DNA of 64,000 nt from Anaeramoeba ignava BMAN (GCA_028826165.1 JAPDFW010000053.1:310001-374000); one strand, 5' to 3'. Numbered from the stretch's first letter, positions 33,111-58,266 are shown. Made by a program: numbers and translations. Notes: generated from the sequence alone by a model not told the origin.

Positions 33111-33141
33111 TTTTTAAATTTGTTAATTAATAAATCAAATA
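33111..33141. repeat. 31-bp direct repeat, identical to 39627-39657 (RCC1-BTB 3' terminus)
   Basis: tttttaaatttgttaattaataaatcaaata is present at both sites. It encodes FDLLINKFK on the minus strand. Confidence 0.9.
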
Positions 33142-39622: not shown

Positions 39623-41416
39623 TTAATTTTTAAATTTGTTAATTAATAAATCAAATAAATTTGGATTTGTTTCATTTAATTGAAAATAATCAATTCCAAA
39701 TTTAATTTCATTAATAATTTCTTGTGTAATTTGAATTTTATTTTTAATTTGATTTGAATAAATCCAATATTCAAATATTTGAAATGATTTATTACTTAAT
39801 TCACTATAATCTGTAACTTTATTAGAAGTATCATCAGTTACAGATAAAAACATTCCTCGATATAATTCACTTCTCATTATTAATATTAATTTTGGAAATT
39901 TATATTGTTTTTCTTTTCTTTCAATTATAAAATCTTTTTCATTTTCATTTTCATTTAAATAAATTCTTTTCATTGTTTCTTCAATTTTTTCATTTGAATT
40001 TATAATTTCTTTAATTTCAGAATATAATTTTGGATTTATTATTCTGTTTGAATAAATCATTTCAAATATTTGATTTGATTCTTTAATTGATTTTTTTGAA
40101 ATAATTTCTTTAAGTTTTTCAATATCATTTTGATTTTGATTTAATCTATATTTCAATATTAATTTATGAGCTTCAATTATTTCTCCATTTTCGATTTTAA
40201 ATGAAATATCACAAAATTCTTTTCTTCTAAATAGTTTTATCAAATCTTCTTCAAGATTGGAAAGAGAAGGAGAATAATAAAGAAATGAATTATTCCAATA
40301 TCCACAAGAAATATGATAATTAGAAATATTTTCATTAAATCTTAATTTAGGAAGTTCGATTTGAATTGGAATTCTTTGATTTTCTGTATCTCCAGTTCCT
40401 AATTGACCAAAATCATTATCTCCAAATCCAATTAGTTTTGGTTTGGATGTTAAAATCAAAGTATGAACAGTTCCAACAGAAAAATCAAGAATATTATCAT
40501 TTTCAAATAAAGATGATTTAATTTCAGTAAATTTGTCAGTATTTTCATCTTCATTTTGGCCAAGTCCATTTAATTGATAATCTCCACATGAATAAAATTT
40601 TCTTTTTGAATTTTCATTTTCATTTTCATTTTCAATCAACATTACTGAATGTTTATAACCACATTGAATATCAATTATTTTACCTTTTGGAATATTTTGG
40701 ATTTTGGTTAATTTTTGGATTTTTTCTTCTTTTCTTGATTCTCCTAATCCAAGTTGACTATAATAATTCCAACCGCATCCAAATAATTCTTGATTTGAAT
40801 TTAAAAGAAAAACGGAAGAAGAAGAATTTCCTGAAAATATTTTAGAAACATTTTTCATCATTAAAATTGGTTTTTCTGTTTGTTTAAGTGTTTCAGAATC
40901 TAAACCAAGTTGGCCATATTGATTTGAACCAATTCCATAAACATTTTGATTTGAAGTTAGTAAGTAAAATGAACGAGCTCCAGAAACAATATCTTGAATT
41001 ACTCTATCTTTTGTATCTTCAATTAATGATGAAATATTGATGAATTCTTTTGGATTTTTTGGATTAATATCTCTTCCTTTGGCAAATACATTTCCTTCTA
41101 TTGTTAAAATAGCTTTATTATCAAAATTACTTGTTACTTTTTGAATATTTTCAATTTGGATTTTTTTAGGATTTTGATTTGAATGTTTTAGATATTCTAT
41201 TGCTTTTCCATTTTCAAAAAGGAAAATTGTTGATAAATAACTTGAAGCAATTTGTTTAATTTGTTTTTCATTTTCATTTTCATTTTCATTTTCATTTTTA
41301 TTTTCATTTCTATTTTCATTTTCAAATTTAAGTTGAATTGGTTTTGTTATTTTATATGGTTCATTTTTAAAACAGAAACCAAGATTATTTTCACCAAAAT
41401 ATAAAATTTCATTCAT
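39623..41416 (-). CDS. RCC1-repeat + BTB domain protein (putative CUL3 adaptor), copy 2
   Basis: RCC1 motifs GSNQYGQLG and CGYKHS. BTB-like EFCDISF..AHKLIL and KLILIMRSELYRGMF..FEYWIYS. Confidence 0.9.
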   Translation of the reverse strand: MNEILYFGENNLGFCFKNEPYKITKPIQLKFENENRNENKNENENENENEKQIKQIASSYLSTIFLFENGKAIEYLKHSNQNPKKIQIENIQKVTSNFDNKAILTIEGNVFAKGRDINPKNPKEFINISSLIEDTKDRVIQDIVSGARSFYLLTSNQNVYGIGSNQYGQLGLDSETLKQTEKPILMMKNVSKIFSGNSSSSVFLLNSNQELFGCGWNYYSQLGLGESRKEEKIQKLTKIQNIPKGKIIDIQCGYKHSVMLIENENENENSKRKFYSCGDYQLNGLGQNEDENTDKFTEIKSSLFENDNILDFSVGTVHTLILTSKPKLIGFGDNDFGQLGTGDTENQRIPIQIELPKLRFNENISNYHISCGYWNNSFLYYSPSLSNLEEDLIKLFRRKEFCDISFKIENGEIIEAHKLILKYRLNQNQNDIEKLKEIISKKSIKESNQIFEMIYSNRIINPKLYSEIKEIINSNEKIEETMKRIYLNENENEKDFIIERKEKQYKFPKLILIMRSELYRGMFLSVTDDTSNKVTDYSELSNKSFQIFEYWIYSNQIKNKIQITQEIINEIKFGIDYFQLNETNPNLFDLLINKFKN

Positions 41417-41601
41417 TTTTGAAAAGAAAAAAATGAAAAAAATGAAAAATGAATTTTAATTTTAATTTTAATTTTAATTTTGATTTTGATTTTAATTTTA
41501 ATTTTAATTTTAATTTTAATTTTAATTTTAATTTTTAATTTTAATTTTAATTTTAATTTTGATTTTAATTTTAATTTTTAATTTTAATTTTGATTTTAAT
41601 T

Positions 41602-43377
41602 TTAATTTTTAAATTTGTTAATTAATAAATCAAATAAATTTGGATTTGTTTCATTTAATTGAAAATAATCAATTCCTGTTTTAATTTCATCAATAATTTG
41701 TTGTGTAATTTTAATTCCATTTTTAATTTGATTTGAATAAATCCAATATTCAAATATTTGAAATGATTTATTACTTAATTCACTATAATCTGTAACTTTA
41801 TTAGATTTATCTTCTGTTACAGATAAAAACATTCCTCGATATAATTCACTTCTCATTATTAATATTAATTTGGGAAATTTATATTGTTTTTCTTTTCTTT
41901 CAATAATAAAATCTTTTTCATTTTCATTTTCATTTAAATAAATTCTTTTCATTGTTTCTTCTATTTTTTCATTTGAATTTATAATTTCTTTAATTTCAGA
42001 ATATAATTTTGGATTTATTTTAGAATTATTTGAATAAATCATTTCAAATATTTGATTTGATTCTTTAATTGATTTTTTTGAAATAATTTCTTTAAGTTTT
42101 TCAATTTGATTTTGATTTTGATTTAATCTATATTTCAATATTAATTTATGAGCTTCAATTATTTCTCCATTTTCGGTTTTAAATGAAATATTACAAAATT
42201 CTTTTCTTCGAAATAGTTTTATCAAATCTTCTTCAAGATTGGAAAGAGAAGGAGAATAATAAAGAAATGAATTATTCCAATATCCACAAGAAATATGATA
42301 ATTAGAAATATTTTCATTAAATCTTAATTCAGGAAGTTCAATTTGAATTGGAATTCTTTGATTTTTTGTATTTCCAGTTCCTAATTCACCATAATAATTA
42401 TCTCCAAATACTATTAATTTTGAATTGGATGTTAAAATCAAAGTATGAACATTTCCAACAGAAAAATCAATAATATCATCATCATTTTCAAATAAAGATG
42501 ATTTGATTTCAGTAAATTCATAAGTATTTTCATTTTCATTTTGGCCAAGTCCATTTAATTGATAATATCCACATGAATAAAATTTTCTTTTTGGATTTTC
42601 ATTTTGATTTTCATTTTCAATTAGCATTATTGTATGATAATTTCCACATTGAATATCAATTATTTTGCCTTTTGGAATATTTTGAATTTTGGTTAATTTT
42701 TGGATTTTTGCTTCTTTTCTTGATTCTCCTAATCCAAGTTGACTATAATAATTATATCCGCATCCAAATAATTCTTGATTTGAATTTAAAAGAAAAACGG
42801 AAGAAGAAGAATTTCCTGAAAATATTTTAGAAACATTTTTCATCATTAAAATTGGTTTTTCTGTTTTTGGAAGTGTTTCAGAATCAAAACCAAGTTGACC
42901 ATATTGATTTGAACCAATTCCATAAACATTTTGATTTGAAGTTAATAAGTAAATTGAATTAGATCCAGAAAAAATATCTTCAATTATTCTATCTTTTTTA
43001 TCTTTAATTAATGATGAAATGTTGATAAATTGATTTGGATTTTTTAGATTAATATCTTTTCCTTTGGCAAATACTTTTCCTTCTTTTGTTAAAATAGATT
43101 GATTATCAAAATTACTTGTTACTTTTTGAATATTTTCAATTTGGATTTTTTGAGGATTTTGATTTGAATCATTTTCTTTTAAATATTCTATTGCTTTTCC
43201 ATTTTTAAAAAGGAAAATTGTTGATAAATAACTTGAAGCAATTTGTTTAATTTGTTTTTCATTTTCATTTTCATTTTCATTTTCAAATTTAAGTTGAATT
43301 GGTTTTGTTATTCCATCTGGTTCATTTTTAAAACAGAAACCAAGATTATTTTCACCAAAATATAAAATTTCATTCAT
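41602..43377 (-). CDS. RCC1-repeat + BTB domain protein, copy 3
   Basis: Intact 591-aa paralogue very similar to copy 2. Confidence 0.9.
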   Translation of the reverse strand: MNEILYFGENNLGFCFKNEPDGITKPIQLKFENENENENEKQIKQIASSYLSTIFLFKNGKAIEYLKENDSNQNPQKIQIENIQKVTSNFDNQSILTKEGKVFAKGKDINLKNPNQFINISSLIKDKKDRIIEDIFSGSNSIYLLTSNQNVYGIGSNQYGQLGFDSETLPKTEKPILMMKNVSKIFSGNSSSSVFLLNSNQELFGCGYNYYSQLGLGESRKEAKIQKLTKIQNIPKGKIIDIQCGNYHTIMLIENENQNENPKRKFYSCGYYQLNGLGQNENENTYEFTEIKSSLFENDDDIIDFSVGNVHTLILTSNSKLIVFGDNYYGELGTGNTKNQRIPIQIELPELRFNENISNYHISCGYWNNSFLYYSPSLSNLEEDLIKLFRRKEFCNISFKTENGEIIEAHKLILKYRLNQNQNQIEKLKEIISKKSIKESNQIFEMIYSNNSKINPKLYSEIKEIINSNEKIEETMKRIYLNENENEKDFIIERKEKQYKFPKLILIMRSELYRGMFLSVTEDKSNKVTDYSELSNKSFQIFEYWIYSNQIKNGIKITQQIIDEIKTGIDYFQLNETNPNLFDLLINKFKN

Positions 43378-43468
43378 TTTTGAAAAGAAAAAAATGAAAA
43401 AATGAAAAATGAATTTTTAATTTTAATTTTAATTTTAATTTTAATTTTAATTTTGATTATTAAATTTG

Positions 43469-45259
43469 TTAAATTAATAAATCAAATAAATTTGGATTTG
43501 TTTCATTTAATTGAAAATAATCAATTCCAATTTTAATTTCTTCAAGAATTTCTTGTGTAATTTGAATTTCATCTTTAATTTGATTTGAATAAATCCAATA
43601 TTCAAATAATTGAAATGATTTATTACTTAATTCACTATAATCTGTAACTTTATTTGATTTATCTTCTGTTACAGATAAAAACATTCCTCGATATAATTCA
43701 CTTCTCATTATTAATATTAATTTTGGAAATTTATATTGTTTTTCTTTTCTTTCAATAATAAAATCTTTTTCATTTTCATTTTCATTTAAATAAATTCTTT
43801 TCATTGTTTCATTTATTCGTTCTTCGTTTATAATTTCTTTAATTTCAGAATATAATTTTGGATTTATTTTAGAATTATTTGAATAAATCATTTCAAATAT
43901 TTGATTTGATTCTTTAATTGATTTTTTTGAAATAATTTCTTTAAATTTTTCAATTTGATTTTGATCTTTTAATCTATAATTCAATATTAATTTATGAGCT
44001 TCAATTATTTCTCCATTTTCTGTTTTAAATGAAATATCACAAAATTCTTTTCTTCGAAATAATTTTATCAAATCTTCTTCAAGATTGGGAAAAGAAGGAG
44101 GAGAATAATAAATAAATGAACTATTCAATCCACAAGAAAGATGATAATCGGAAATATTTTCATTAAATCTTAATTCAGGAAGTTCAATTTGAATAGGAAT
44201 TATTCCATTTTTCGTATTTAGATTTTTTATATGATCTGATTTATTTTCTCCAAAAAATATCAATTTTGCTTTGGAAGTTAAAATCAAAGTATGATACTTT
44301 CCAACAGAAAAATCAAGAATATTATCATCATTTTCAAATAAAGATGATTTGATTTCAGTAAATTCATAAGTATCTTCATCTTTGCCAAGTCCATTATATT
44401 GATAATCTCCACATGAATAAAGTTTTCTTTTTGGATTTTCATTTTGATTTTGATTTTCAATCAACATTATTGAATGAAAAAATCCACATTGAATATCAAT
44501 TATTTTGCCTTTTGGAATATTTTGGATTTTTGTTAATTTTTGGATTTTTCCTTCTTTTCTTCTTGATTCTCCTAATCCAAGTTGACCAAATTGATTATAT
44601 CCGCATCCAAATAATTCTTGATTTGAATTTAAAAGGATCATATTTTTTGCAAAACTTCCTGAAAATATTTTAGAAACATTTTCCATCATTAAAATTGGTT
44701 TTTCAGTTTCTTTAAGTGTTTCAGAATCAAAACCAAGTTGACCTAAATAGTTTTCCCCAATTCCATAAGCATTTTGATTTGAAGTTAATAAATAAATTGA
44801 AGTCATTCCGCAAGTAACATCTTGAATTATTCTATCATTTGTATCTTCAATTAATGATGAAATATTGATAAATTGATCTGAATTTTGCAAGTTTATACAA
44901 GTTCCTTTTGCAAATACATTTCCTTCATAAGTTAAAATAGCTTCATTTCGAGAACTGGAAGAAATTTTTTTGATTTGTTCAATTTGGATTTTTTTATAAT
45001 TATCTGTCAAAAAAGTTGAAGTATATCGAACTGCTTTTGAATTTTCAAAAAGGAAAATTGTTCTTGATTCGTTACAAGAAATGTATTTGATTTGTTTTTC
45101 ATTTTTGAATGGATATTTTTTTTCTTTTCTTTCTGTTCTTGGAAAATAATATGATCTTGGTTTATTCGGTTCGTTTAGAAAAGGAAAACGAAAAGAATTT
45201 TCACCAAAAAATATTACATCATTAAGTTGATTTTCTTTTGCAAATTGAATTTTTATCAT
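43469..45259 (-). CDS. RCC1-repeat + BTB domain protein, copy 4 (divergent N-terminus)
   Basis: Intact 596-aa paralogue. One extra base at ~43471 trims the last few codons relative to the other copies. Confidence 0.9.
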   Translation of the reverse strand: MIKIQFAKENQLNDVIFFGENSFRFPFLNEPNKPRSYYFPRTERKEKKYPFKNEKQIKYISCNESRTIFLFENSKAVRYTSTFLTDNYKKIQIEQIKKISSSSRNEAILTYEGNVFAKGTCINLQNSDQFINISSLIEDTNDRIIQDVTCGMTSIYLLTSNQNAYGIGENYLGQLGFDSETLKETEKPILMMENVSKIFSGSFAKNMILLNSNQELFGCGYNQFGQLGLGESRRKEGKIQKLTKIQNIPKGKIIDIQCGFFHSIMLIENQNQNENPKRKLYSCGDYQYNGLGKDEDTYEFTEIKSSLFENDDNILDFSVGKYHTLILTSKAKLIFFGENKSDHIKNLNTKNGIIPIQIELPELRFNENISDYHLSCGLNSSFIYYSPPSFPNLEEDLIKLFRRKEFCDISFKTENGEIIEAHKLILNYRLKDQNQIEKFKEIISKKSIKESNQIFEMIYSNNSKINPKLYSEIKEIINEERINETMKRIYLNENENEKDFIIERKEKQYKFPKLILIMRSELYRGMFLSVTEDKSNKVTDYSELSNKSFQLFEYWIYSNQIKDEIQITQEILEEIKIGIDYFQLNETNPNLFDLLI

Positions 45260-45331
45260 GAAAAGAAAAAAAATGAAAAAGAAAAATTTTTTAATTTTAA
45301 AAAAATTAAAGTTAAAGTTAAAGTGTTAATC

Positions 45332-47461
45332 CTAATTTAAAAGAAAAATAAAAAGAAAAAGAAAATAATAATAAAAATAATTGCAAAAAAATATTTTTTG
45401 ACTTGAAGATGGTTGAGGATTTGGAGTTGGAATTGAAAATTGAAGAAAGGGAACAGGATATTGTTCATAAGGGGAACTATAAGCATATCCTGTTTTACGA
45501 TCAACAACAGAAATATAAATATCAGTGAAATTTCCTAAAGATGTATTTGATATCATTTTGTTTGAATTTGCTTCAATTTGGATTGTTCTTGTTTCTTCAT
45601 ATTCCCCATGATTTATATCACTTAATAAAAAAACATAAGTTTGGGTTGAATCAATAAATGAAGTTGAAAATGATTCAATTCCTTCAATTTGGTTGCAATC
45701 AACCAAAGTCATATTTCTGACAAAAACCCTACAAACATCGGCTGAATCAGTGGAAAAGTGTTTTTTCCCCAAATTTGAATTGGAAAGATAACTTGATCCA
45801 TTTGAAAAATACAGGAATTGATCATGAGTATCAATTGCCATTGTTGAAACTGAAAAAGATGTTAAATTAGTAAAGCCAACAATATTAAAAGTGGATATTT
45901 GGATTTTTGCAAGATAGAAACGGGAATATGTCCCTAACAAAACATAAACATACTCACTTGATGAATCCATAACCAAATTATTGATTACGTTTTCTCCAAA
46001 TCTGATTTGATCCACAATCTCCAAATTGGGAACACTCATTTTGTAAAGTGTGTTATTGTTCTGCATTGTATCTTCATATGCAATATAAAGGAAATTACCT
46101 CGAGAATCAAAAACAACCGATTGAGTGTAGTTGTCTTCTGATCCAAAAATTTCTTTAACTTCAACAACTGTAAAATTATCAATTTGGATTTTGATGATTT
46201 TTAACCCTCCATATTCCAAAAAATAGAGGAATCCATGCTGATTATCGATTTCTCCAAAGTAAATATTATCATTATCATCTCCAGATACAAGAAAATCCAA
46301 AAGTTCAAATAGCACAAGATCCACTTTGGCAACTAGTCCGTAATGCTCAAACCCAACATATCCGACTTGGTTGATTTCATCCACAACAATAACTTTCGGA
46401 TTCCGAAAATCTTGCACATAAGTTTGGTTGATCTGAGAAAATGTTGCCAAATCAAATTGAATAACTTGAGAATTGCTGAGAGAAATAAAAGAGTAATTTT
46501 GGTGAAGCAGGCTATCATTATTTGCGATAAGAAAACTTAGCGAATATGCATCTGTTTGAAATTCAAATGAATCAATTCTGGAGAAATTCTTCAAGTCAAT
46601 CCGAACAAGAAATCCAGGATATGAATCAGCTAAAAAATATGCGAGTTGATTTCTTTCATCAATGCCAGCAGAAATGGCATTTTGTTCCAATGAAGCGCAA
46701 GTGATGGCATCTATTCGACTAAAATCAGTTAGATTGATCTTGATAACTTTCATTGGAGAAGTGCCTGTTCCAACAAACATTAAATTTGAGCCAAAATCAA
46801 TTACTCCACAATTAGGACTTGTTTCTGTTGTTGAATTTAAAGAAAGAGAAGAAACTTGAACAAAATCCAACAAGTCAATTTTATGAATTTTTGGATTTGA
46901 TCCTGGATCTGTGAAAATATAAAGAAACCCATTTGGAACATCGATTGCAGATCCTAAACGGTAATTGTCGGAAATATTTAAAGTTGATTCTTGGACAAAA
47001 TTTTCCAAATCAATTTTTACAATTGCTGGAGAATTTCCAGTAAATGAAATAAAATATCCCTTTTGGTTTTTATAATCAAATTGCGCAGATTGCAAATTAG
47101 ATACTCCATTTAAATGAAGAACATTCACTACTTGGAATTTCTCCAAATTCACTTTCACAATTTGAGCTTCATTTTCAAATGTTCCAAAATATGAAAATTG
47201 ATTTTCATTATCAATTATTCCACAACGAATATTAAAAACTGTTAAATTAATTGAATCAATAAAATCAAGTGGATTTGTGTTGAATTTGTAAAGAAATGAT
47301 TCAATCCTTGTTTTTGTATCAGCAAAATAAACAAAATTGTTTTGAGAATCAATTAAAGAAACATCAGTTGATTGCATTTCTATTGGAAAATTAAAATATT
47401 GGTTAACTATAAGTATAGATTGAATAAATAGAAAAAGGGAAAAAAAGAAGAAAATTTTCAT
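45332..47461 (-). CDS. Secreted/possibly GPI-anchored beta-propeller repeat surface protein
   Basis: Signal peptide, then ~45-aa repeats (IDxxxxxxYFxTxxxPxxIxKIDLxxF), a PTPNPQPSSS linker and a hydrophobic C-terminus. Confidence 0.75.
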   Translation of the reverse strand: MKIFFFFSLFLFIQSILIVNQYFNFPIEMQSTDVSLIDSQNNFVYFADTKTRIESFLYKFNTNPLDFIDSINLTVFNIRCGIIDNENQFSYFGTFENEAQIVKVNLEKFQVVNVLHLNGVSNLQSAQFDYKNQKGYFISFTGNSPAIVKIDLENFVQESTLNISDNYRLGSAIDVPNGFLYIFTDPGSNPKIHKIDLLDFVQVSSLSLNSTTETSPNCGVIDFGSNLMFVGTGTSPMKVIKINLTDFSRIDAITCASLEQNAISAGIDERNQLAYFLADSYPGFLVRIDLKNFSRIDSFEFQTDAYSLSFLIANNDSLLHQNYSFISLSNSQVIQFDLATFSQINQTYVQDFRNPKVIVVDEINQVGYVGFEHYGLVAKVDLVLFELLDFLVSGDDNDNIYFGEIDNQHGFLYFLEYGGLKIIKIQIDNFTVVEVKEIFGSEDNYTQSVVFDSRGNFLYIAYEDTMQNNNTLYKMSVPNLEIVDQIRFGENVINNLVMDSSSEYVYVLLGTYSRFYLAKIQISTFNIVGFTNLTSFSVSTMAIDTHDQFLYFSNGSSYLSNSNLGKKHFSTDSADVCRVFVRNMTLVDCNQIEGIESFSTSFIDSTQTYVFLLSDINHGEYEETRTIQIEANSNKMISNTSLGNFTDIYISVVDRKTGYAYSSPYEQYPVPFLQFSIPTPNPQPSSSQKIFFCNYFYYYFLFLFIFLLN

Positions 47462-47531: not shown

Positions 47532-50500
47532 ATGGATTTTTTTGTGTTTGATCAACAAAATAATCCAGTAACAAAATTCTTACCAGATTTTCAAAGCTTT
47601 CTTTCGCCAACTAAAGATGAATTCCACAATCTCCTTTATAATTTCTATGTTGCAAGTATAGCAAAACTTAAAGTTGATAAAAAAATCGCGAAAATCAAAA
47701 CCAAATCAGAACATCGAGAAGACAAACTTTGGAGGATGGAAAATCGCACACAAACACAATCGAAATTTTGTCATGGAAATAATTTAACAGCCTCAGTAAC
47801 ATATAAAGTTGCTATATATGATACTGATATGGCAAAAAAGTTGATAAAAACATATACGAAGTCGGTTAATAGATGTCATAATAAGTTATCTGAAGCAACT
47901 ACAAGAATGGAGAGCACAGAAACAAAGGTGGGACTTTATCTGCAGAGAGTTTTCCAGAGCATCCCGTTCTCAAACCTTCACAAAGATGATAACGCCAATC
48001 TTCATTTGATCCAAAAATTGAGATCTCTTTTGAATCATTTATTCTTTTTTGAAAGATTATCAATTGAAAAAGGTGATGTTTATTACGATAGATTCAACAG
48101 CTCTTTGCATGTTTGGATCAACAACGTTTCTCTTCGTTTGTATGAGATTGGATCTAGCAGCCAAATGTTGTTTGTTTTTTTCCATTTACTCACAACTCCG
48201 CATTCTGGAAAATGGTCGATGAATCTTATTTATATTAACGAGAACTTCGACTATGACAAGATGAATTACCTCAAAACCCTATTGAAGTTTGTTTTGCATC
48301 CCCTCATCAAATCGACAAAGCTTTCCGAAAAGCCTTTTTATCTTCTGGAACCCGATTTTGTTCTTCATCTTATCAATCTGCCTTTCTCCAATTTTTTCGG
48401 GTATTTATTTGCGATTCCAGGAGAGTTGGGTTTCTCTGTTGCAAGCGGAATTGTCCAGGACTTTGTGTGGATCTTGATGGATGCTGTTGTTCGGTTTGAA
48501 AAGTATTTGGACTTCAGAAAATCAATTGCGGACCTTCTTCTTCATTTCGTCTGGCTTTTTGACGAATTTTCTCACAAAATAAACACTCCAGATGCACAAC
48601 GAGACTTCCCCAAAATCATCGATGAGCTTGTTGTGAAACCAATTTTGCAGATCTCTGCCTGCCAAGACAAGTCCGTTTTGTTCCATTTTACGGATCTTCC
48701 ATTTTATTCTTTGTCAGTTTTTGCCGGATTTCGGATCATGAATTTCTTTGTCACAAGTTCCGACCAGAACCCTCCAACAACATCCCAGCAATGGTACCAG
48801 CTTCTGACTAATGATCCCAATCTTTTTGAGCGCTTCGGCTCGCTTCTGCAGTCTTCCAAAGGGAGCCACAGTATGTTTATCATTCTCGCAAATTTGGCGG
48901 TTTTTTTAAATTTGCCGGATTTTGCAATGTGTGTTATTGACTTGATATTCAGAGTCAGTTGCATTGTTGATATTTCAAAAGAGAAGATGTTTCCTCACGG
49001 CAGAAAATCACTTACAACAATCATGATCAAATATCCATTTTTGATCTCAAATGTTCTTACTCTCACATCCCAATATATAAATGTTCTCGGTTCGCGAAGC
49101 ATGGAGTTATTTGCTGAATTTCCTTTCACAAAATGGCAGATCAATCCCACAGATATCGGCACTATCCAAGCTTATCTCGATATGGGAAAAGATTCTATCC
49201 AATTCGTTTTTGGATGTTGGCTTGTGGATCATATTATTTGGGGAATCTCACCCGAAATCGAGAATATAGGTGTACTTAATGATACGGGTACACAGCTTCA
49301 AATCATCCCACGAGTTCTTGGAGTATTTTTCCGAAACATAAAGGATAAACGTATTTGTAATTGGTGTTGGCGTGCCTTTTATCGCTTCAATGTTTATACC
49401 AAACTGGGTGACCCAAGTGGAATTTTATTTAAATATCCAACTGATCCTCTTCTTGATTTAACCCCGCATTTCCCCAAAGACAAGAAGCAAACCCTTGAGC
49501 CCATTGTTGCTTTTGTCGGTCTTATGTTCTTCGATATTGATAATGCTTCCACTTGGGATAATTTTGCAAACACTCTTATTCGGGCAAAAGAGTTCTATTC
49601 CGTAATTAAAGTTCTTCATACTCGAGTTCCTCAAGTTTTGAAGAATAACAATGATCCTTCTTTTAAAAAAGAAATTTCTTCTCTTATTGATATTATCAGG
49701 CCTTTGTTAAAAATTGATAAATTTAATACTCATATTGAAGAGAAGAAGGTTAATTTCAAGAGAAGTAATGCATTAGCATCTATGATTGAATCTTTGATAA
49801 TTAATCGGATGCATTACCGTATGAATGATTTACCTAAGGATCAAAATTTCACTATCAATACAATTCCAAATCAAGATTTCGATATAAATTCTGTTGCAAA
49901 TCAAGAAAATCAAAACCAAGAAAATATTGAAAATCAAGAAAATATTGAAAATCAAGAAAATATTGAAAATCAAGAAAATCAAGAAAATCAAGAAAATCAA
50001 GAAAATAATGAAAATCAAAATATTGAAAATAATGAAAATATTGAAAATCAAAATATTGAAAATCTTCAAATTCAAAATATTGAAAATATTCAAAATTATC
50101 AAGATCAAACCCAATCCTTAAATACAAGCCAAATTCAATTCCAATTTAAAAGCCAAAACCCAACCCAAAATCAAGAAGAAAATAACAATTTAAATAACAA
50201 TTTAAATAACAATCCAAAAAATAACAACCCAGTTTCTCTTGAAAAAATGATCCAATTTTGGTTATGCTTCTTTGAATCAATACCCAAATGGAACAAAGAC
50301 AAGAAAATTATCAAATACTTGGATACAATCTTCCGCTCGGCATTCCTGTGCCAAGAACGACCAATAATTACAAAATTTATTGCCAAACAATATGGAAAAA
50401 TTGCAACAGGAAAGAAGAAAACAGGACTTTTTTCGAAAAAAGAGAAACAAGTAACATTGATCGATGTTGGTAGTACATTTATGCACAGAGGACGCACGAA

Positions 50501-53500
50501 AATCATGAATAAATCACCTTGGTATTATTTCGAGGTTCTGCTTGTGGAGCTTCTGTGGCAGAGCGATGCAATCGATAATCTGGGGATGAAAATTATAAAA
50601 TTTAGAGGTGTTCCAATGAAGAAAATACTCGACAAATACAAGATTTACACAAATTTTGAAATCATCAACTTATGGGTGGAATTTGCAGGATATCTCAAAG
50701 AGAATAACAGATTGCTTCCTATTGTCCTACAAATTATTTGCTCAATTTATTTCTTGTGTCTTTTTAAGGGAGAAATAACGTTGGACATGATTAATGATTC
50801 TTATTGGTTCGGAATTTATCTTTTTGAACTAACCAAAAAATCTATTGATGAGATCAAAAAGCAGATTATGGAGGTTATTGAGTACGAACTTGAGGAAGCA
50901 ACAGGATCAATCAAAAATCCCAAAAAACATAAGCATAAAGAAGGTGTTATTCGCGATTACAACGCGGAAATAACAAAGATGTACCAATCAATGAAAACTT
51001 GGTTCACACACACAAGTATTGAGCGTTTGATTCCTGAGCCGATCACGTATAACCACAACGAATTTCTAAGTTTGATTCACTCCAATCTTTTGAATCCGAA
51101 TAAAAACAAATGGGATCTTAAAACACCAACTGATGAAAATATCCAGAAATTGCACAATTCCTTATGGTTTCATCTTATCAATTTGCAGAATATTTTCAAC
51201 GATATTTACACGAATATTCAGTTTATCGAGGATCTCCCAAGCTATGTGCATTTCTTGGTTAAAAAGGTACTCAAACCAAGGATGAACTACCCGCCACTGA
51301 TGCTCAAGATGGTTCTTTACCAAAATCTTGTTTTACAAAACCGATCGCAAATGAACCAATTCAATCTAACAACAATTAACGCACCATTGCTTAACTTGTA
51401 TCCCTTATTCGTTCTTGACGGGAAAATTTACCCGCAAATTGAGGAAGATCTGCAAAAACGCCAACCAATTATTATGGATTCAGCGCGTAAATTCGCGTCT
51501 TTCAAAACACATCACGAATCACTAAATAGGGATTATTTGGAATTAAGTACAAGTTTGTATGAAAATGTTCCAACAACCGAAACAGTGTACCGAACTTGCA
51601 CTTACACAACAACTTACACCGATTCAAACGGAAACACACAGACTCAATACCACAGTCATCAAGTCGCGTTTACTTTCTACATCACAAGAGTGGAGAAAAA
51701 TACAAGCATTGAATCGAAAATGATCTATAATCGCAAAGAAGCAGAAACTTATTTGGTTCCTGCCAAAAACCCAAACAACACTCTTGGATTCAACAACATT
51801 TCAACTTATATGATCTATTTGGATTTTGCGGATCAGTCCGTTGATATTGCCAAAAAACAACAATTCCAACTACAGGATTATCCGATCGATGATCTCTGGA
51901 AAAAATCGATCAATTGGTTCTACAAAATGCTTAATTTCGACTCTTCTTCTTCGGAGCTTAAAGAATACCCATTGGCTCAATTGCTCATCAAAGAGTTCAC
52001 ATACATCATTGGCATGCAATTCATCCGAAACAACCACGAGCAGTTAGACGCGGTTGCCCAGATTATTATAGATCATCCTGCTCACATCCCACGAATTGCG
52101 CCGCTTTTTAATCCTCAGTTAATCCCCAAACGCACGCTTGATTATTACTCCAGAATCATGCAAACCTATGTGCGACATGAAGAGTCACTTTGCTCGCCTG
52201 TTTTGTTATCTTTCCAATTCAACGAGTGGCTTGAATCAAAACCAAATCAAGATGAGATAAAGCGGGCAATCGCAATTTTCTTGCAATATTCACGCAAAGA
52301 AATATTCAGAATATATCCCGTTCTTGCAACATTCAACACTCAATCTTTGTTGATCATGTGTATCTTTGAATATCCAAAAAATTTGATTCCTGTTATTGAG
52401 CAAGTAATGGCAACTACACTGGAAAAGCAGGCAATTCCCGCTTTGTGGGACATTTTTGCGCAGCTTCCGTTTGCCAAATTACAGCTGCAAGACGTCCAAA
52501 AAATTGTCTCAATGATTTCTCAACCACTTATTACAACTCTTACCCAGATGATCACTAACCAAACCCTTTATGATTACTTCGAATCGGATTTGCTGACTTC
52601 CTTGATGCGCTTTTTTGAAGCCTTTATTGTTTCCATTTGCCAGAACCCTCAAATTGTGCCAATCAGCAGGGAATTCAGTCCTTCACTTTCATCGCAAATA
52701 CTCTACAATCTATATATTCCTTTTATCGGTTCTGTTATTCTGAATTCGCAGCAATTTCCCGCATTCCGTGAGAATTCTTCCTTTGTGGATCAAGCCTTCA
52801 TGTCTTTTTGCAGATCCCTCTCAACACTCCAAACAGTGTATCAATGGAGCTTGATTGAATTTATGAACTTTTTTTATACTACTCTTTCCAAAATGAACAT
52901 TCCTTACGTAATTTCCAAGTATTTCCAACATTTTTCCTCAATATCCAACTGGGAACAAACAATACCCACCATGGAATTCATCAACCAACTGCTCATGTTG
53001 AGCGTAACTGCTCACCAGGATTTGATCCGCATTGTCGTATCGCGACTTCCATGGAAGCAAACCGAACAATCTCTTGTTGATCCGCAAAATCCACAGTCTT
53101 TTTTCTTCTACGAGACTCTTTTCCAAATCATTCTCAATTTGATCCAGCGTTATCAGCGCTTCTCCGATGCAAACTACGCCCGGATTTTCCTCAATTTTCT
53201 TGATATTGTCTCCAAATCACTTTCCTGGGAAAATCTCAACGCAAATGCTTATCAATCACTTCTTGAATCATCCACTGCTGATCCGAATTTCATGCAATAC
53301 AACCGTCGCGAGAAACTTGATTTTTCAAATGAATTCACTTCCCAGAAATTCCCTCCAAATATCACCAATCTCGAGCAACGCGGATTCACTTTAATCAACG
53401 CTATCCGCAAAATCGGTTTTTTTGACAACGATATCAACTACGATCACATCATACCATTCATTCAATTCGTCACAAATCTTCTTCTCGCTTCAGCCCAAAT

Positions 53501-54629
53501 CATCCGTACTGAACCAATCGAAGAACAAGAAGGCTTTTGGAAAAGACTTTTCAAAAGGAAAAAGAAAATTGATCTTGGTCCCGAATTCGCAAAAGTCCCC
53601 CTATTTGCGATCCCCTTTTCTGAGAAAAATTTCACTCTCGTCTTCATGGATCTCATCCGCGTTGCCCTCATCGATGTGACGCAAGACAAGCATAATCTGA
53701 TGTTCGTGTTCGACGCCTTCTCTCTCCAAAATGCCCAAGTCTCTCTTCTTCTTCTCAAGGGCTGCTCAGACTATTTGGAAAATAATCCGCGCGTTTCCCA
53801 CAAAATTATTTTTTCTTCATGCGAAAAAATTCGCAATTTAGATGACTTTGTCGTTGTTTCTGAGAAGGCCCACGATTGCTTCTTCCCCATAAAAGACAAC
53901 TATTCAATGTTTCTTGATCACTTTGGTTTGATTGATGTTGATGAGAATGCGCTTGTCAAATCATCTATCGAAAATTCTTCATTTCTCTCCTTTTTCACTT
54001 TTGTCACAAAAAGACTCAAAGATAACAACAACTCAATTGGAATCCCAGACACTTTTTCGTTGCTGGACAAAATTCTCTCCTTGTTAGTAAACGCAAACCT
54101 GCAATTCCGTTATGAATTCAAGTTCTTCTATTTATTCGATCTTTTTATTCGAGGAATTGATTCACTTTTCCATCAAGATAATACAGATTTCAACCAAAAA
54201 TTCGCTGATAAACTCAAACTTCTCCAGGAAAAACTCCAGAATTTAACCAAGAAAAAGGGATGCAAAAAAATTATCGAAGGAATGGACAAAAAAGATGAAG
54301 TTAGTTCTCAATGTTTGATTTCTTTCCAACTTCTCAAAATTGCTTTTGAACTTGTTTTTCCAAATTGTTTAAAAAATAAGAAAACAAAAGAATCTTACCA
54401 AAAGGATTTTAACAATATTCTAAATGCAAAAAAGAATTCTGTTTTCAGACCCCAAATCGAGAAGATTGAATCTATTTTTTCTTTCAAATCTCAAGATATT
54501 ACTCCTCCTCAAATTATCAATTTACTTATAAGAGAACTATTTGTTAATTTTATTTCGAACGGAAATGATTATTTTATTGCTTTTCTTGATGAATCTCGAA
54601 AAAATGGAGAATGGATTATTTTGAAATGA
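47532..54629 (+). CDS. EPG5: EPG5 (ectopic P-granules autophagy protein 5) homologue, intronless, 2365 aa
   Basis: Size and helical character fit. Recalled EPG5-like motifs: LFFFER..FNSSLHVWI..LFVFFHLLTTPHSGKW, LFAEFPFTKWQI, HESLNRDYLELSTSLYEN, IAPLFNP. Confidence 0.8.
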   Translation: MDFFVFDQQNNPVTKFLPDFQSFLSPTKDEFHNLLYNFYVASIAKLKVDKKIAKIKTKSEHREDKLWRMENRTQTQSKFCHGNNLTASVTYKVAIYDTDMAKKLIKTYTKSVNRCHNKLSEATTRMESTETKVGLYLQRVFQSIPFSNLHKDDNANLHLIQKLRSLLNHLFFFERLSIEKGDVYYDRFNSSLHVWINNVSLRLYEIGSSSQMLFVFFHLLTTPHSGKWSMNLIYINENFDYDKMNYLKTLLKFVLHPLIKSTKLSEKPFYLLEPDFVLHLINLPFSNFFGYLFAIPGELGFSVASGIVQDFVWILMDAVVRFEKYLDFRKSIADLLLHFVWLFDEFSHKINTPDAQRDFPKIIDELVVKPILQISACQDKSVLFHFTDLPFYSLSVFAGFRIMNFFVTSSDQNPPTTSQQWYQLLTNDPNLFERFGSLLQSSKGSHSMFIILANLAVFLNLPDFAMCVIDLIFRVSCIVDISKEKMFPHGRKSLTTIMIKYPFLISNVLTLTSQYINVLGSRSMELFAEFPFTKWQINPTDIGTIQAYLDMGKDSIQFVFGCWLVDHIIWGISPEIENIGVLNDTGTQLQIIPRVLGVFFRNIKDKRICNWCWRAFYRFNVYTKLGDPSGILFKYPTDPLLDLTPHFPKDKKQTLEPIVAFVGLMFFDIDNASTWDNFANTLIRAKEFYSVIKVLHTRVPQVLKNNNDPSFKKEISSLIDIIRPLLKIDKFNTHIEEKKVNFKRSNALASMIESLIINRMHYRMNDLPKDQNFTINTIPNQDFDINSVANQENQNQENIENQENIENQENIENQENQENQENQENNENQNIENNENIENQNIENLQIQNIENIQNYQDQTQSLNTSQIQFQFKSQNPTQNQEENNNLNNNLNNNPKNNNPVSLEKMIQFWLCFFESIPKWNKDKKIIKYLDTIFRSAFLCQERPIITKFIAKQYGKIATGKKKTGLFSKKEKQVTLIDVGSTFMHRGRTKIMNKSPWYYFEVLLVELLWQSDAIDNLGMKIIKFRGVPMKKILDKYKIYTNFEIINLWVEFAGYLKENNRLLPIVLQIICSIYFLCLFKGEITLDMINDSYWFGIYLFELTKKSIDEIKKQIMEVIEYELEEATGSIKNPKKHKHKEGVIRDYNAEITKMYQSMKTWFTHTSIERLIPEPITYNHNEFLSLIHSNLLNPNKNKWDLKTPTDENIQKLHNSLWFHLINLQNIFNDIYTNIQFIEDLPSYVHFLVKKVLKPRMNYPPLMLKMVLYQNLVLQNRSQMNQFNLTTINAPLLNLYPLFVLDGKIYPQIEEDLQKRQPIIMDSARKFASFKTHHESLNRDYLELSTSLYENVPTTETVYRTCTYTTTYTDSNGNTQTQYHSHQVAFTFYITRVEKNTSIESKMIYNRKEAETYLVPAKNPNNTLGFNNISTYMIYLDFADQSVDIAKKQQFQLQDYPIDDLWKKSINWFYKMLNFDSSSSELKEYPLAQLLIKEFTYIIGMQFIRNNHEQLDAVAQIIIDHPAHIPRIAPLFNPQLIPKRTLDYYSRIMQTYVRHEESLCSPVLLSFQFNEWLESKPNQDEIKRAIAIFLQYSRKEIFRIYPVLATFNTQSLLIMCIFEYPKNLIPVIEQVMATTLEKQAIPALWDIFAQLPFAKLQLQDVQKIVSMISQPLITTLTQMITNQTLYDYFESDLLTSLMRFFEAFIVSICQNPQIVPISREFSPSLSSQILYNLYIPFIGSVILNSQQFPAFRENSSFVDQAFMSFCRSLSTLQTVYQWSLIEFMNFFYTTLSKMNIPYVISKYFQHFSSISNWEQTIPTMEFINQLLMLSVTAHQDLIRIVVSRLPWKQTEQSLVDPQNPQSFFFYETLFQIILNLIQRYQRFSDANYARIFLNFLDIVSKSLSWENLNANAYQSLLESSTADPNFMQYNRREKLDFSNEFTSQKFPPNITNLEQRGFTLINAIRKIGFFDNDINYDHIIPFIQFVTNLLLASAQIIRTEPIEEQEGFWKRLFKRKKKIDLGPEFAKVPLFAIPFSEKNFTLVFMDLIRVALIDVTQDKHNLMFVFDAFSLQNAQVSLLLLKGCSDYLENNPRVSHKIIFSSCEKIRNLDDFVVVSEKAHDCFFPIKDNYSMFLDHFGLIDVDENALVKSSIENSSFLSFFTFVTKRLKDNNNSIGIPDTFSLLDKILSLLVNANLQFRYEFKFFYLFDLFIRGIDSLFHQDNTDFNQKFADKLKLLQEKLQNLTKKKGCKKIIEGMDKKDEVSSQCLISFQLLKIAFELVFPNCLKNKKTKESYQKDFNNILNAKKNSVFRPQIEKIESIFSFKSQDITPPQIINLLIRELFVNFISNGNDYFIAFLDESRKNGEWIILK

Positions 54630-54652
54630 TTAAAAATTCAAAAAGGAAAAAG
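54627..54652. repeat. 26-bp direct repeat, identical to 56873-56898
   Basis: tgattaaaaattcaaaaaggaaaaag is present at both sites, and the flanking bases differ. Confidence 0.9.
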
Positions 54653-54795
54653 AAAAAAAGATTATTTTTAAAAAGAAAAAAAGATTATTTTTAAAAAGTG
54701 GAAAATTTTGATTTTTGATTTTCGCTTTTTTAATTAAAAAACAAAAACAGAAAAAAATTTTTTCTTTTTTCTTTTTTCATTTTTTTAAAAAAAAA

Positions 54796-56879
54796 ATGGA
54801 CAAAACACAAAAAAAATATCTTTATAAAAAAATAAATTTTTCCTTTATTCAAACATCCAAAAATTCTTTTGAATCATCAATCAAATTTCCAGATACAATA
54901 ATCTATTGTGGATCAAACAAAACTCAATTTAAATGCCATAAATCCATTCTTTCTTCTCATTCAAATTATTTTGATTTAGCTTTTAAAGAAAATTCATTTA
55001 ATAAAGTTTTTTTTCCAAATATTTCAAAACAAACAATGAAAGGAATTTTGGATTTTATTTACACATCTGAACTTGATTTTTCTGGACTCAGTCCATTAGA
55101 AATTTGGAAAACTTCTCAAATGTTTAAATTAGATGAATTAACTCAAATAACTGAAGATGAAATGAGTCAAAATTTAAATCAAGATTTTGTTTTTGTTATT
55201 CTTCAAGAAACAAGAAAAAAAGAAAAATCTAATTTGGAACTAGAATGTTATGAATGGATTGAAGATCATTTTCAAGATTTTTTAGAAAGTCAAAAAATAC
55301 ATCTTTTATCAAGTAAACAATTAATGGATGTAATTGAAATCCGAATCAAATATCATTCAGAAATGGATCTTGAAACAGTTTTTCTTTTATTGAATAATTG
55401 GAAAAAATCTCGAAAATCAAGTAATCAAGGTTTATCTGAATTTCGTCAGTTAAAAACATCTTCCAGATTCAAAGAAATTGTTACTTCCCTTGCAAATGAT
55501 TTTTTTCAAAAGAAAAAGAATCCAAAAATTCTTGGTTCTGATTTTTTTGATTTGATTCCACAAGAAATTCTTTTAAAAGCTGAATGTGGAATCCAAATTG
55601 GTGCTAAAAGAAATAAAGTGGAAAATCGAGAAGAAGCAAAAAAAGAATTCCAAAAACTCAAGCAAATTCGTATTCTTTCGAGAAAATCAGCAAAATCTAA
55701 TTTAGAAATTAAATCACTTCTTGATTCAAATGAAAAATATTTAAATCAAATTGAAAATCTAAAAAAAGAAAAAAAGCAAATGAAAGAAAAGATCACAAAT
55801 CTTGGATCCAAATTTGAAATTGAAAAAGAAAATTTACAAAAGCAAAACCAAAATCTTTTCCAAAAAGTAGGATTACTTGAGGATTCTTTGAATGAAAACA
55901 AAAAAGAAAAAGAAAAACTCAAAAAAAGATGTTCTCAATACCAAAGTACTATTAATTCAAATGAATCAAGATATCAGGATTTAAAACAGAGGCTTCTTGA
56001 TACGAAATCCAAATTTGAAATTGAAAAAGAAAATTTACAAAAACAAAACCAAAATCTTTTCCAAAAAGTAGGATTACTTGAGGATTCTTTGAATGAAAAC
56101 AAAAAAGAAAAAGAAGAACTCAAAAAAAGATGTTCTCAATACCAAAGTACTATTAATTCAAATGAATCAAGATATCAGGATTTAAAACAGAAATTTATCA
56201 ATCTTGAAATGGAAATGAAGCAAAGAAAAGAAGAAAAAGTAAAAGAAAACTTCATAGATAAAGAAACAAAAACAGAACTTAATCACCAATTAGCAATTAT
56301 TGCACAAAATGGAGATTTATCCAAAGTTATGAATTGTATTAAGCAAGGTGCAGATCCTCATTATGAATCTCAAAAAGGAATTAAACTAATGCATTTTTTT
56401 GCTATGAAAGCTTCTGTTAGTGATTTCAAATCTTTTTTACAAAAAACTCAAACAACACTTGATAACAGTAAAACAAATTTTGGATGGTCGATTTTCCATT
56501 TTGCTGCACATGGAGGAAATAAAGAGTTGTATCGTTGGTTGAAGAAAAAGTTGAGAAAAGATCCAAAAATTGTGAATGTTGGTTTAAGGTTTGTTAATTA
56601 AAAAAAAAATTGGAAAAAAAAATAATTCTTATTTTTTCCCTAATTCTCTTTTTTTTCTTTTTTTTTTCAAAATTTAGTTTTACTCCTTTTGGATTAAGAT
56701 TATCAGGATTTTATTGTGATAAATGCCATGCAAGTCCTATTATTGGAACAAGATATCATTGTTTAATTTGTGAGAATTTTGATCTTTGTGAATTTTGTAA
56801 AGATTCTCAATTTGGAAGACATAGAATTACACATCCATTAGAAAAAAATGAACCTCAAACAGAATTTAATTGTGATTAA
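54796..56879 (+). CDS. BTB - coiled coil (201-bp internal duplication) - ankyrin - ZZ zinc finger protein; intron 56589-56677
   Basis: BTB FKCHKSILSSHSNYF..ILDFIYT, ankyrin GWSIFHFAAHGGN, ZZ CDKC..IIGTRYHCLICENFDLCEFC..H..H. The duplicated segments are ~55807-55989 and ~56008-56190. Confidence 0.88.
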
Positions 56880-57005
56880 AAATTCAAAAAGGAAAAAGTG
56901 GAATATTCAACAAAAAAAATTTTTTTTTTCTTTAATTTCAATTAATCAAAACTAATCGATTTAAAAAAATAAAAAGCAAAAAATAAAGAAATATTTTTTT
57001 TTAAA

Positions 57006-57099
57006 TTAAATTTTTTGATAATTTTTTGAATCTATTTGAGGATCAAATTCAAAACCATCATTTTCCTTTCGATTTATATTCTCATCAAAAGCATCATTT

Positions 57100-57130
<31 letters not shown>

Positions 57131-58266
57131 CATTATCATTATCATTATCTAAATCTAAATCTTTGTCTTGTTGTTGATTATTATTACTTTTAAGATCATC
57201 TTCTGAAATGAATTCTTTTAAGTTTTGTTCTTTTTGTAATTTTTTTTTGTTGAGATGTCTTTTATGTTCTGCATATAAAAGAGATAATTTTAATTCCTCT
57301 TTTTTATCCTTTTCATGTTTGCAACGAAAAATTTGAGGAATTTTTTTTCGAACTTTTGAATCAAAAATAACAAATATTAAAAAATCCAAAAAACCTTGAG
57401 AAGGAGAAAAAATTGCCTGCATAATATCTAAAAAACGGATTTTATTAGGTTTTCCCAAAATGATTTCTCTTGTTCTTTTTATTGTTGACCATAATATAAC
57501 AAGCAAATAACAAAATCCAAGTGATGATATTCTGATTTGCATTTTCAAAATTCGAGCACCTTTTGGATTTTTTTGATCTGGAAATAATTTTTTGATATTC
57601 AAATAAGATTTGCGAATTACTTTAATTGTTAATATATATAATGTAAAACAGATGAGAAGTGCCATCCAATAAAATGAATAAAAAAGAGTTTTAAAATTTG
57701 GTTCTGTTGCCCAACACCTAATTAATCAACATATAAAATCGATTTTAATTTTATAAATTAATTTTAATTTTATAAATGAATTTTAATTTTATAAATGAAT
57801 TTTAAATTTAATTTTTTGGATCAAAATTATTTAAATTTTAAAAGTACCATTTTGTTGTTTGAGCTTTAATATTAGCTTTAGCTAAAGCAGCAAAGAAAAC
57901 AACAATTAAAATTACAGAAATAAGAATATGAAAAAACCAATAAATTTTATTCAATCTTTTCAAAGACCAAGATTTAACAATCCTCAAATAAACAATAATG
58001 GAAATAGCCATTGTCCAACAAGGTATAGCAACGCCGAAAGTATAAACCCACAAACCTTGTGGACGACATATTTTTGGTAAATTGCTTCCTGGAATTATAT
58101 ATCCTGTTGATACAATAAAATCATAAACTGAAAGAACACATAATGATTTCCGAAAAAATGTCCGAAATGACTTCACTCTTAAATATAATAATATTATTAC
58201 TAATGCTCCAAATGCTCCTAAACTAGCAGAAATTGTGGATAGAATTATTACTGAATCTGTTACCAT
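57006..58266 (-). CDS. cAMP-receptor-like (CAR/Crl, GPR157-type) GPCR; intron 57847-57718
   Basis: Seven hydrophobic helices. LSVYDF, ICRPQG, WTMAIS, WCW (formed by splicing) and PSQGFLDFLIF are typical of this family. Confidence 0.87.

Follow-up and report, generated by a model that had tools for sequence, protein, structure and literature searches.

An exact 26-nt repeat at the 3′ ends of two neighbouring Anaeramoeba ignava genes may be a short templated copy

In a 64,000-nt stretch of the Anaeramoeba ignava genome (positions 310001-374000 of contig C46, within a 42.8-Mb assembly of 147 contigs), which we call the window and from whose first letter positions are counted unless a contig is named, an exact 26-nt sequence stands at the 3′ ends of two adjacent, co-oriented genes. 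These are an EPG5-like gene upstream (gene X) and a BTB-ankyrin-ZZ gene (gene Y), the latter followed by a convergent gene (gene Z). The last codon of Y, its stop codon and the start of its 3′ untranslated region (3′UTR; the first 20-odd bases) are a copy of X's. We lean, with moderate confidence, towards template switching in cis as the origin of this second 26-mer, a short copy from which Y now takes its stop codon. An earlier note on this DNA had proposed that the 2.2-kb gene was integrated whole, as a cassette, and the analysis does not support that proposal. The DNA is rich in A+T (60-91% in 2-kb windows), and none of the papers listed as mentioning A. ignava deals with rearrangements of its genome.

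The elements that define the repeat, TGATTAAAAATTCAAAAAGGAAAAAG, are the following, all on the plus strand:

47532-54629: last long open reading frame (ORF) of gene X in the ORF list, EPG5-like, 2365 codons, ending ...GEWIILK TGA
54627-54652: repeat copy 1, the apparent source copy; the TGA stop codon of X and the first 23 nt of its trailer, containing ATTAAA
54653-54698: exact 2 x 23-nt tandem, unit AAAAAAAGATTATTTTTAAAAAG, present at copy 1 only, where it breaks the homology
54699-54707: TGGAAAATT, a continuation of the homology, identical to 56899-56907 at 8 of 9 positions
56873-56898: repeat copy 2, the apparently derived copy; starts at the third base of the last Cys codon of Y, encodes Asp and TAA, and begins the trailer of Y
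56899-56907: TGGAATATT, the continuation of the homology directly after copy 2, matching TGGAAAATT

The two exact copies are 2246 nt apart. Each holds a TGA and a TAA in two frames, plus the hexamer ATTAAA directly at the stop. The TAA of Y (56877-56879) lies inside copy 2, in a frame that differs from that of the TGA in copy 1, and the translation of the second exon of Y bears out this placement.

Several searches indicate that the match is not fortuitous. Within the window there are no further matches to the 26-mer at up to 3 mismatches, and none of 100 dinucleotide shuffles yielded two matches. In the whole genome, these two copies are the only ones at up to 2 mismatches. As an empirical null, we compared windows from -12 to +45 around stop codons, pairing windows from different sequences (two strands, two stretches, 264 kb of genome); among 71,927 such pairs, the longest exact string in common was 17 nt. 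A chance match or a common 3′UTR motif is thus ruled out by the shuffles, the genome-wide count and the stop-window null. The earlier note had described this exact direct repeat and had named a common 3′UTR motif as what would refute its proposal; the repeat stands, unique in the genome and beyond chance, and no such motif was found.

The homology extends a little beyond the 26-mer. If the 2 x 23-nt tandem is removed from the first locus, the homologous tract is 35 nt long with 1 mismatch (34/35), and the 8/9 match that adds the last 9 nt has a probability of 0.0024 for a random pair of 9-mers. The left flanks of the copies show no relationship to each other, aligning with a score of 19 where the null median is 22. 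On the right, similarity beyond the 35 nt scores 41-55, a level that 7.6% of AT-rich tiles equal. This right-hand similarity corresponds to a generic leader sequence of A and T runs that occurs at many loci; in Y it lies before the start codon, and the leader motif (query positions about 205-340) has dozens of DNA matches across the genome, at 72-91%. A longer, hidden duplication around the 26-mer was therefore rejected, as the left flanks are unrelated and the right-hand similarity is generic.

Our read evidence consists throughout of Logan contigs, from which rare forms are lost and which carry no information on 3′ ends, rare alleles or circles. A short-read contig of 5860 nt (run X2, record 9) covers 53000-55835 and bridges both sides of copy 1, and another (run X2, record 12) covers 56279-56904 without differences and bridges Y into copy 2. 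The join between copy 2 and its right flank is spanned by just 6 aligned short-read bases and is taken from the assembly. Independent short-read contigs thus bridge three of the four boundaries of the two copies. One unit of the 54653-54698 tandem is absent from one short-read contig of run X2, which reflects either variation in copy number or a collapse introduced by contig assembly. Inside X, the short-read contigs differ from the assembly by single bases at 53183, 53840, 54098, 54107 and 54557, with the two studies differing, which suggests haplotype or strain variation of about 0.1-0.2%.

The direction of copying can be addressed through the relatives of X. Gene X has two paralogs in the genome, a closer one on contig C127 (63% identical) and one on contig C79, and a C-terminal motif is common to them. 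An A. ignava protein labelled ‘ectopic P granules protein’ at NCBI shares 62-63% identity with X; a Pfam search of X gave no match, so the EPG5 name follows the NCBI label of the 62%-identical paralog. The C127 paralog ends ...GDWKILK TGA, followed by TTTAAAAATCAA, and its sequence from the stop onwards, TGATTTAAAAATCAA, is identical at 13 of 15 positions to the first 15 nt of the 26-mer. The third of these genes ends ...EWKLRK TGA, so that the TGA is kept there as well. No positional motif, whether poly(A) or stop-context, was evident after 48 confident gene ends, and the resemblance after the C127 stop is therefore better read as ancestry. Native status can be demonstrated at copy 1 for its left side and its first 15 nt. 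Judged by sequence comparison, copy 1 looks native to X, as the earlier note had it, and copy 2 looks derived, with copying from X to Y.

The C127 locus (121503-126302 of that contig) is uninformative for synteny, since the X paralog is followed there by about 370 nt of CAATTTCAAAT-type satellite and then by a PSF2 (GINS)-like gene. The second intron of that gene is filled with an AAAATT microsatellite.

Gene Y, which lies between the two copies, is a single intact gene co-oriented with X, encoding 664 aa with BTB, coiled-coil, ankyrin and ZZ parts. Its features, on the plus strand, are:

54732-54795: leader of A and T runs before the start codon, a generic motif at many loci
54796-56588: exon 1, 597 codons plus 2 nt, encoding the BTB domain (residues 24-126), the coiled coil and ankyrin repeats (499-589)
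55806-55990 and 56007-56191: in-frame 201-nt tandem duplication in the coiled coil, 99% identical
56589-56677: intron, 89 nt, GT..AG, phase 2, from the reading frames; the frame of exon 2 is the only one with the ZZ domain
56678-56879: exon 2, encoding the ZZ zinc finger and ending ...EFNCD TAA (Pfam ZZ E = 1e-13; translation; alignment to the transcript-derived ORF P0153)

The A. ignava protein P0001 at NCBI (664 aa, ‘btb (poz) domain-containing 2a-related’) equals this model at 100% identity; the segment holds one complete, co-oriented gene with an intron, as had been claimed. The BTB domain (PF00651, residues 24-126) scores 59.6 bits against a cut-off of 20.5 and the ZZ domain (PF00569) 51.3 bits against 21.4; Ank_2 reaches 24.2 bits, under its cut-off of 27.3, and residues of about 485-595 match many ankyrin-repeat-rich proteins, with E down to 1e-40. 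The tandem duplication doubles a 67-residue coiled-coil segment, and the short-read contigs show an A/G difference at 56043.

For relatives of Y, its two exons were searched separately and P0001 was used as the whole protein. DNA and protein searches of the 42.8 Mb found no donor or second copy of Y in its own genome, and no DNA paralog. Within the genome, the closest proteins reach 30-34% identity in the BTB part of Y and 44% in its ZZ exon. Among 1.84 billion representatives there was no closer relative, only ankyrin or BTB relatives at the level of domains, and those BTB-type or ankyrin-ZZ relatives whose source was looked up are all from A. ignava. Since the repeat is 34/35 identical and the best Y paralog 30-34% identical, the repeat is much younger than Y, and a copy-and-paste insertion would therefore need a donor that has since been lost.

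The nearest ankyrin-ZZ relative, on contig C60 (NCBI KAJ5074285; P0153, a complete ORF), ends ...EPDSKFQC, with the codons TGT TGA. Y ends ...EPQTEFNCD (TGT GAT TAA), one residue beyond the natural C-terminus of this relative. From this alignment, the coding sequence of Y is judged complete, with copy 2 starting within one codon of the natural end. In the relative, the ankyrin region and the ZZ exon are separated in the genome, in the same order as in Y. Its locus (C60:723364-726540; P0036 / P0153) has a thioredoxin-like N-terminus in place of the BTB domain and a satellite-filled intron of about 2.2 kb between the ankyrin part and the ZZ exon, and its annotation (629 aa) is without most of the ZZ exon that is present in the transcript-derived ORF (665 aa). 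The idea that Y borrows the stop of its host thus holds in one part: its stop codon does lie inside copy 2, but Y is no fragment in need of a borrowed stop and ends at its natural terminus.

A second case of the same kind was found in the same window, with the following features on the minus strand:

33111-33141: isolated 31-nt copy of an RCC1-BTB terminus, at the stop of an FG-GAP/FN3 receptor gene (ORF 33135-36752)
39627-39657: source 31-mer, in the last codons of RCC1-BTB array member P3, with an identical copy at 41606-41636 in member P2

In the tandem RCC1-BTB genes P2 and P3, the 31-mer spans the final ten codons, ending before the stop of the source gene. The receptor gene is the next co-oriented gene, its copy of the 31-mer lying 6.5 kb downstream. 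Between P3 and P2, the flanks of the 31-mer agree at 40/40 nt upstream and 36/40 nt downstream; the flanks at the receptor end agree with the array context at 12/40 and 16/40, which is about chance level. The receptor ends ...ELQADLDI, the natural terminus of its family: of 14 aligned paralogs, 10 stop at DLDI, the remaining four having DLDL, DLDF or DLEYN. The first 7 nt of the 31-mer fall on this conserved ...DLDI stop, and a near-identical donor of the receptor gene is absent (DNA identity at most 71%). The receptor-end patch starts right at the stop of the recipient, as at Y. After a target-site duplication, one expects the insert behind the first copy and a continuation of native sequence behind the second. 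At the twin, native sequence follows the first 31-mer copy and the second is an isolated patch, so a target-site duplication is contradicted there.

We scanned 264 kb of the genome for short repeats at neighbouring gene ends. Apart from satellites and paralogs, the 26-mer locus and its 31-mer twin were the only cases. Two further candidates were rejected. A 27-mer pair at C46:139435/141246 brackets a satellite and not a gene. At a BTB paralog locus on another contig (C2:503144-506752), the repeats belong to a dispersed satellite family and represent a different phenomenon. There, a 502-aa BTB paralog is flanked by direct repeats of about 400 nt, 98% identical (at about 250-640 and 2640-3030 of the locus); the satellite has a period of about 290 nt, lies beside many genes and occurs as copies of about 70% identity on many contigs.

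As to the RCC1-BTB array itself (39623-47461), it consists of four or five tandem genes that are 86-95% identical, each preceded by a TTCATTTTT...CTTTTCAAAA leader and an (AAAATT)n spacer. Member P4 (31408-33025) sits beyond the receptor gene.

The template-switch reading is favoured because the repeat is exact and unique, copy 1 looks native, Y is old, single and complete, and the twin has the same geometry. Under this reading, with Y already resident, its 3′ end would have suffered a break or a stalled replication fork that caused the growing strand to switch back about 2.2 kb, in cis, to the stop-proximal trailer of the co-oriented X. The switch was probably primed by a stop-containing microhomology, TGATTAA here and TATTTGA in the twin. 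After copying 26 nt there, or 35 nt with the 8/9 extension included, the strand would have gone back, with the outcome that the frame of Y ends ...Cys-Asp-TAA inside the copied tract and that the 3′UTRs of X and Y begin alike, ATTAAA included. We infer the template-switch mechanism, the use of microhomology and the prior residence of Y from what the sequence preserves. The expected pattern, a same-strand tract with unrelated flanks, is what we find (26/26 plus 8/9, 2246 nt apart), and we also count for this reading the other recent slippage-type events at the locus, namely the exact 2 x 23-nt tandem and the 99% identical 201-nt tandem.

Several points weigh against a templated patch. At the 26-mer locus, the patch and insertion models predict the same present-day sequence. 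Templated insertions made by polymerase theta typically copy within tens of bases, not over 2.2-6.5 kb. Both of the two patches lie exactly at the recipient's stop, which is more precise than an unguided repair scar predicts, and the model therefore needs a further element, either selection or some tie to gene 3′ ends. Finally, the microhomology is a supposed one, the stop of the relative of Y being TGT TGA and not TGT GAT TAA.

Sequence features of mobile elements were sought directly. No terminal inverted repeats join 54653 onwards with the sequence up to 56872; the sole inverted-repeat pair nearby is an A-run and a T-run within the spacer between X and Y. There is no transposase, the only long ORF between the copies being the BTB/ankyrin/ZZ gene, and no recombinase in the segment, whose Pfam matches are limited to BTB, ZZ, ankyrin and coiled coil. 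The earlier note had likewise reported neither transposase nor terminal inverted repeats, which the ORF, Pfam and inverted-repeat searches confirm. The segment keeps its 89-nt intron and 143 nt of upstream leader; no poly(A) tail precedes copy 2, where the sequence reads ...GAATTTAATTG, and no parent gene of a retrocopy was found for Y in its own genome. Neither an empty-site joint (54626/54652 to 56873/56899) nor a back-joint is among the 15 joints listed, contigs being prone to drop rare forms. The junction of the X end with the repeat had 0 matches in metagenome contigs, and no A. flamelloides orthologue of X or Y surfaced in protein searches.

The most direct alternative is that the 2.2-kb Y segment, promoter and coding sequence together, was integrated at the 3′ end of X, either with a target duplication of 26-35 bp (through a staggered break, or through a template switch that reached a donor and re-entered upstream of where it had left) or by single crossover of a circle that carried the 26-mer. 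The arrangement of repeat, gene and repeat fits this, as the repeat is X's own end and a single complete gene, leader included, occupies the segment. Against it, there is no donor copy despite the 34/35 repeat, and terminal inverted repeats, transposase, recombinase and poly(A) tail are all missing; the 15 listed joints include none of the empty-site or circle type. The right end of the segment would also need to fall within one codon of the natural stop of Y, and the twin, with native continuity after the first copy, contradicts target duplication. Integration with a 26-35-bp target duplication is thus disfavoured at the 26-mer locus, and we regard integration as a whole as unlikely, though still to be reckoned with. 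The cassette of the earlier note, for which we see no donor, recombinase, or empty-site or circle joint among those listed, falls under this heading.

It is also conceivable that the copies are old and have been held identical by selection or by ongoing gene conversion, the 26-mer being a functional 3′-end module or a binding site that co-regulates X and Y. The presence of TGA and TAA in two frames, with ATTAAA, a hexamer of the poly(A)-signal type, directly at the stop, would suit such a module. However, the 26-mer is otherwise absent from the 42.8 Mb, no positional motif follows the 48 confident stops, and the flanks are unrelated (left score 19 against a null median of 22), so there is no homology with which to start conversion. 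Moreover, X and Y differ in expression roughly 10-50-fold in the RNA-like runs, contig depth being a poor measure. We therefore hold this explanation to be quite improbable. (Runs X3 and X4 are taken as RNA-like because the spliced form of Z is present in both; in them, X is the most highly covered gene, with Y far less covered.) That coverage would favour an RNA-mediated origin, in which the 3′ end of the X mRNA, between its stop codon and poly(A) site, templated the filling of a break at the end of Y, by reverse transcriptase or polymerase theta, as a heavily 5′-truncated mini retrocopy. The tract starts at the X stop and has about the length of a very short 3′UTR, and an A8 run lies 13 nt past copy 2; but CAAC stands between the homology and the A-run, the tract of the twin is coding sequence that ends before the source stop, and both cases are in cis, on the same strand and beside the source gene, which is no prediction of a trans-acting RNA template. 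This origin seems very improbable to us. An artefact of assembly or polishing, or a chance match in low-complexity DNA, has in its favour that the genome is 75-90% A+T and that the join of copy 2 with its right flank is unbridged by the listed short-read contigs. Yet chance is excluded by the shuffles and by the empirical null, both copies appear unaltered in independent short-read contigs, by which three of four boundaries are bridged, and a repeat of 26 nt is not long enough to lead a long-read assembly astray. We give this explanation hardly any credence.

More broadly, A. ignava might have a recurrent rearrangement process that is tied to gene 3′ ends, of which the 26-mer locus would be one footprint. 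This could be terminator-to-terminator template switching (for example, at conflicts between replication and transcription), which would move the stop and trailer module of one gene onto the next gene downstream in the same orientation, or transposon-independent integration of whole genes with long target duplications. We offer this as a rather unlikely and speculative extension.

Beyond copy 2, the neighbouring feature is:

57006-58266, minus strand: gene Z, convergent, encoding a multi-pass membrane protein in two exons, with an intron at 57716-57845 (from ORFs)

Spliced contigs of runs X3 and X4 connect 57715 directly with 57846 and so confirm this intron. The label of G-protein-coupled receptor (GPCR) that the earlier note had given to Z found no confirmation, as no Pfam family was matched. 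In run X1, contig depth rises from about 100 to over 100,000 across 57600-57967, at an AATTTTA-type microsatellite in the intron of Z, as would be expected of a simple repeat present in very great abundance.

The locus carries a caution, in that a gene between exact direct repeats, in a genome rich in repeats and in A+T, need not have been inserted. The twin shows how the possibilities can be told apart: by finding the copy whose two flanks are both native, and by comparing the end of the bracketed gene with the natural terminus of its family. We regard the feature as real and non-random and as mildly interesting: the kind of event is ordinary, and the twist lies in its recurrence and its stop-codon precision. 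Two independent patches occur in one 64-kb window, both from an upstream co-oriented terminus onto the stop of the recipient, a hint that template switching in A. ignava may favour the 3′ ends of genes. If true, such a preference bears on the evolution of 3′UTRs and terminators in compact protist genomes.

Among known systems, the closest resemblance is to templated insertions, or filler DNA, of the kind attributed to polymerase-theta end joining or synthesis-dependent microhomology-mediated end joining (SD-MMEJ) and to fork stalling and template switching/microhomology-mediated break-induced replication (FoSTeS/MMBIR). As in these, a short same-strand tract of 26-35 nt is identical to nearby sequence, mobile-element features are lacking, a junction microhomology is plausible and other slippage-type duplications occur at the locus. 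The locus departs from them in that the copies lie 2.2 kb apart (6.5 kb in the twin), the typical distance for end-joining filler being tens of bases, and in that source and recipient are both at gene 3′ ends. The left and right attachment sites (attL and attR) of elements that integrate at the 3′ ends of tRNA or protein genes, rebuilding the gene end from a core copy that they bring, are similar in that direct repeats equal the host 3′ end, the segment is co-oriented and the host gene is intact. Here, however, the organism is a eukaryote, the segment is single-copy, without integrase or recombinase and encoding only a BTB-ankyrin-ZZ protein, and neither circle nor empty site is among the listed joints. 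Target-site duplications of DNA transposons and of retrocopies made by long interspersed nuclear elements (LINEs) likewise place direct repeats around a gene-sized segment, but the repeat here is 26-35 nt as against 2-11 nt, terminal inverted repeats, transposase and poly(A) are absent, intron and leader are kept, and the segment is single-copy. Short-tract ectopic gene conversion would also leave an identical short tract in adjacent co-oriented genes; here, the flanks are unrelated on both sides, with no homology to initiate or resolve it. By analogy, then, the locus appears to share only its geometry with att-site integration and target-site duplications, and to behave like a templated filler insertion.

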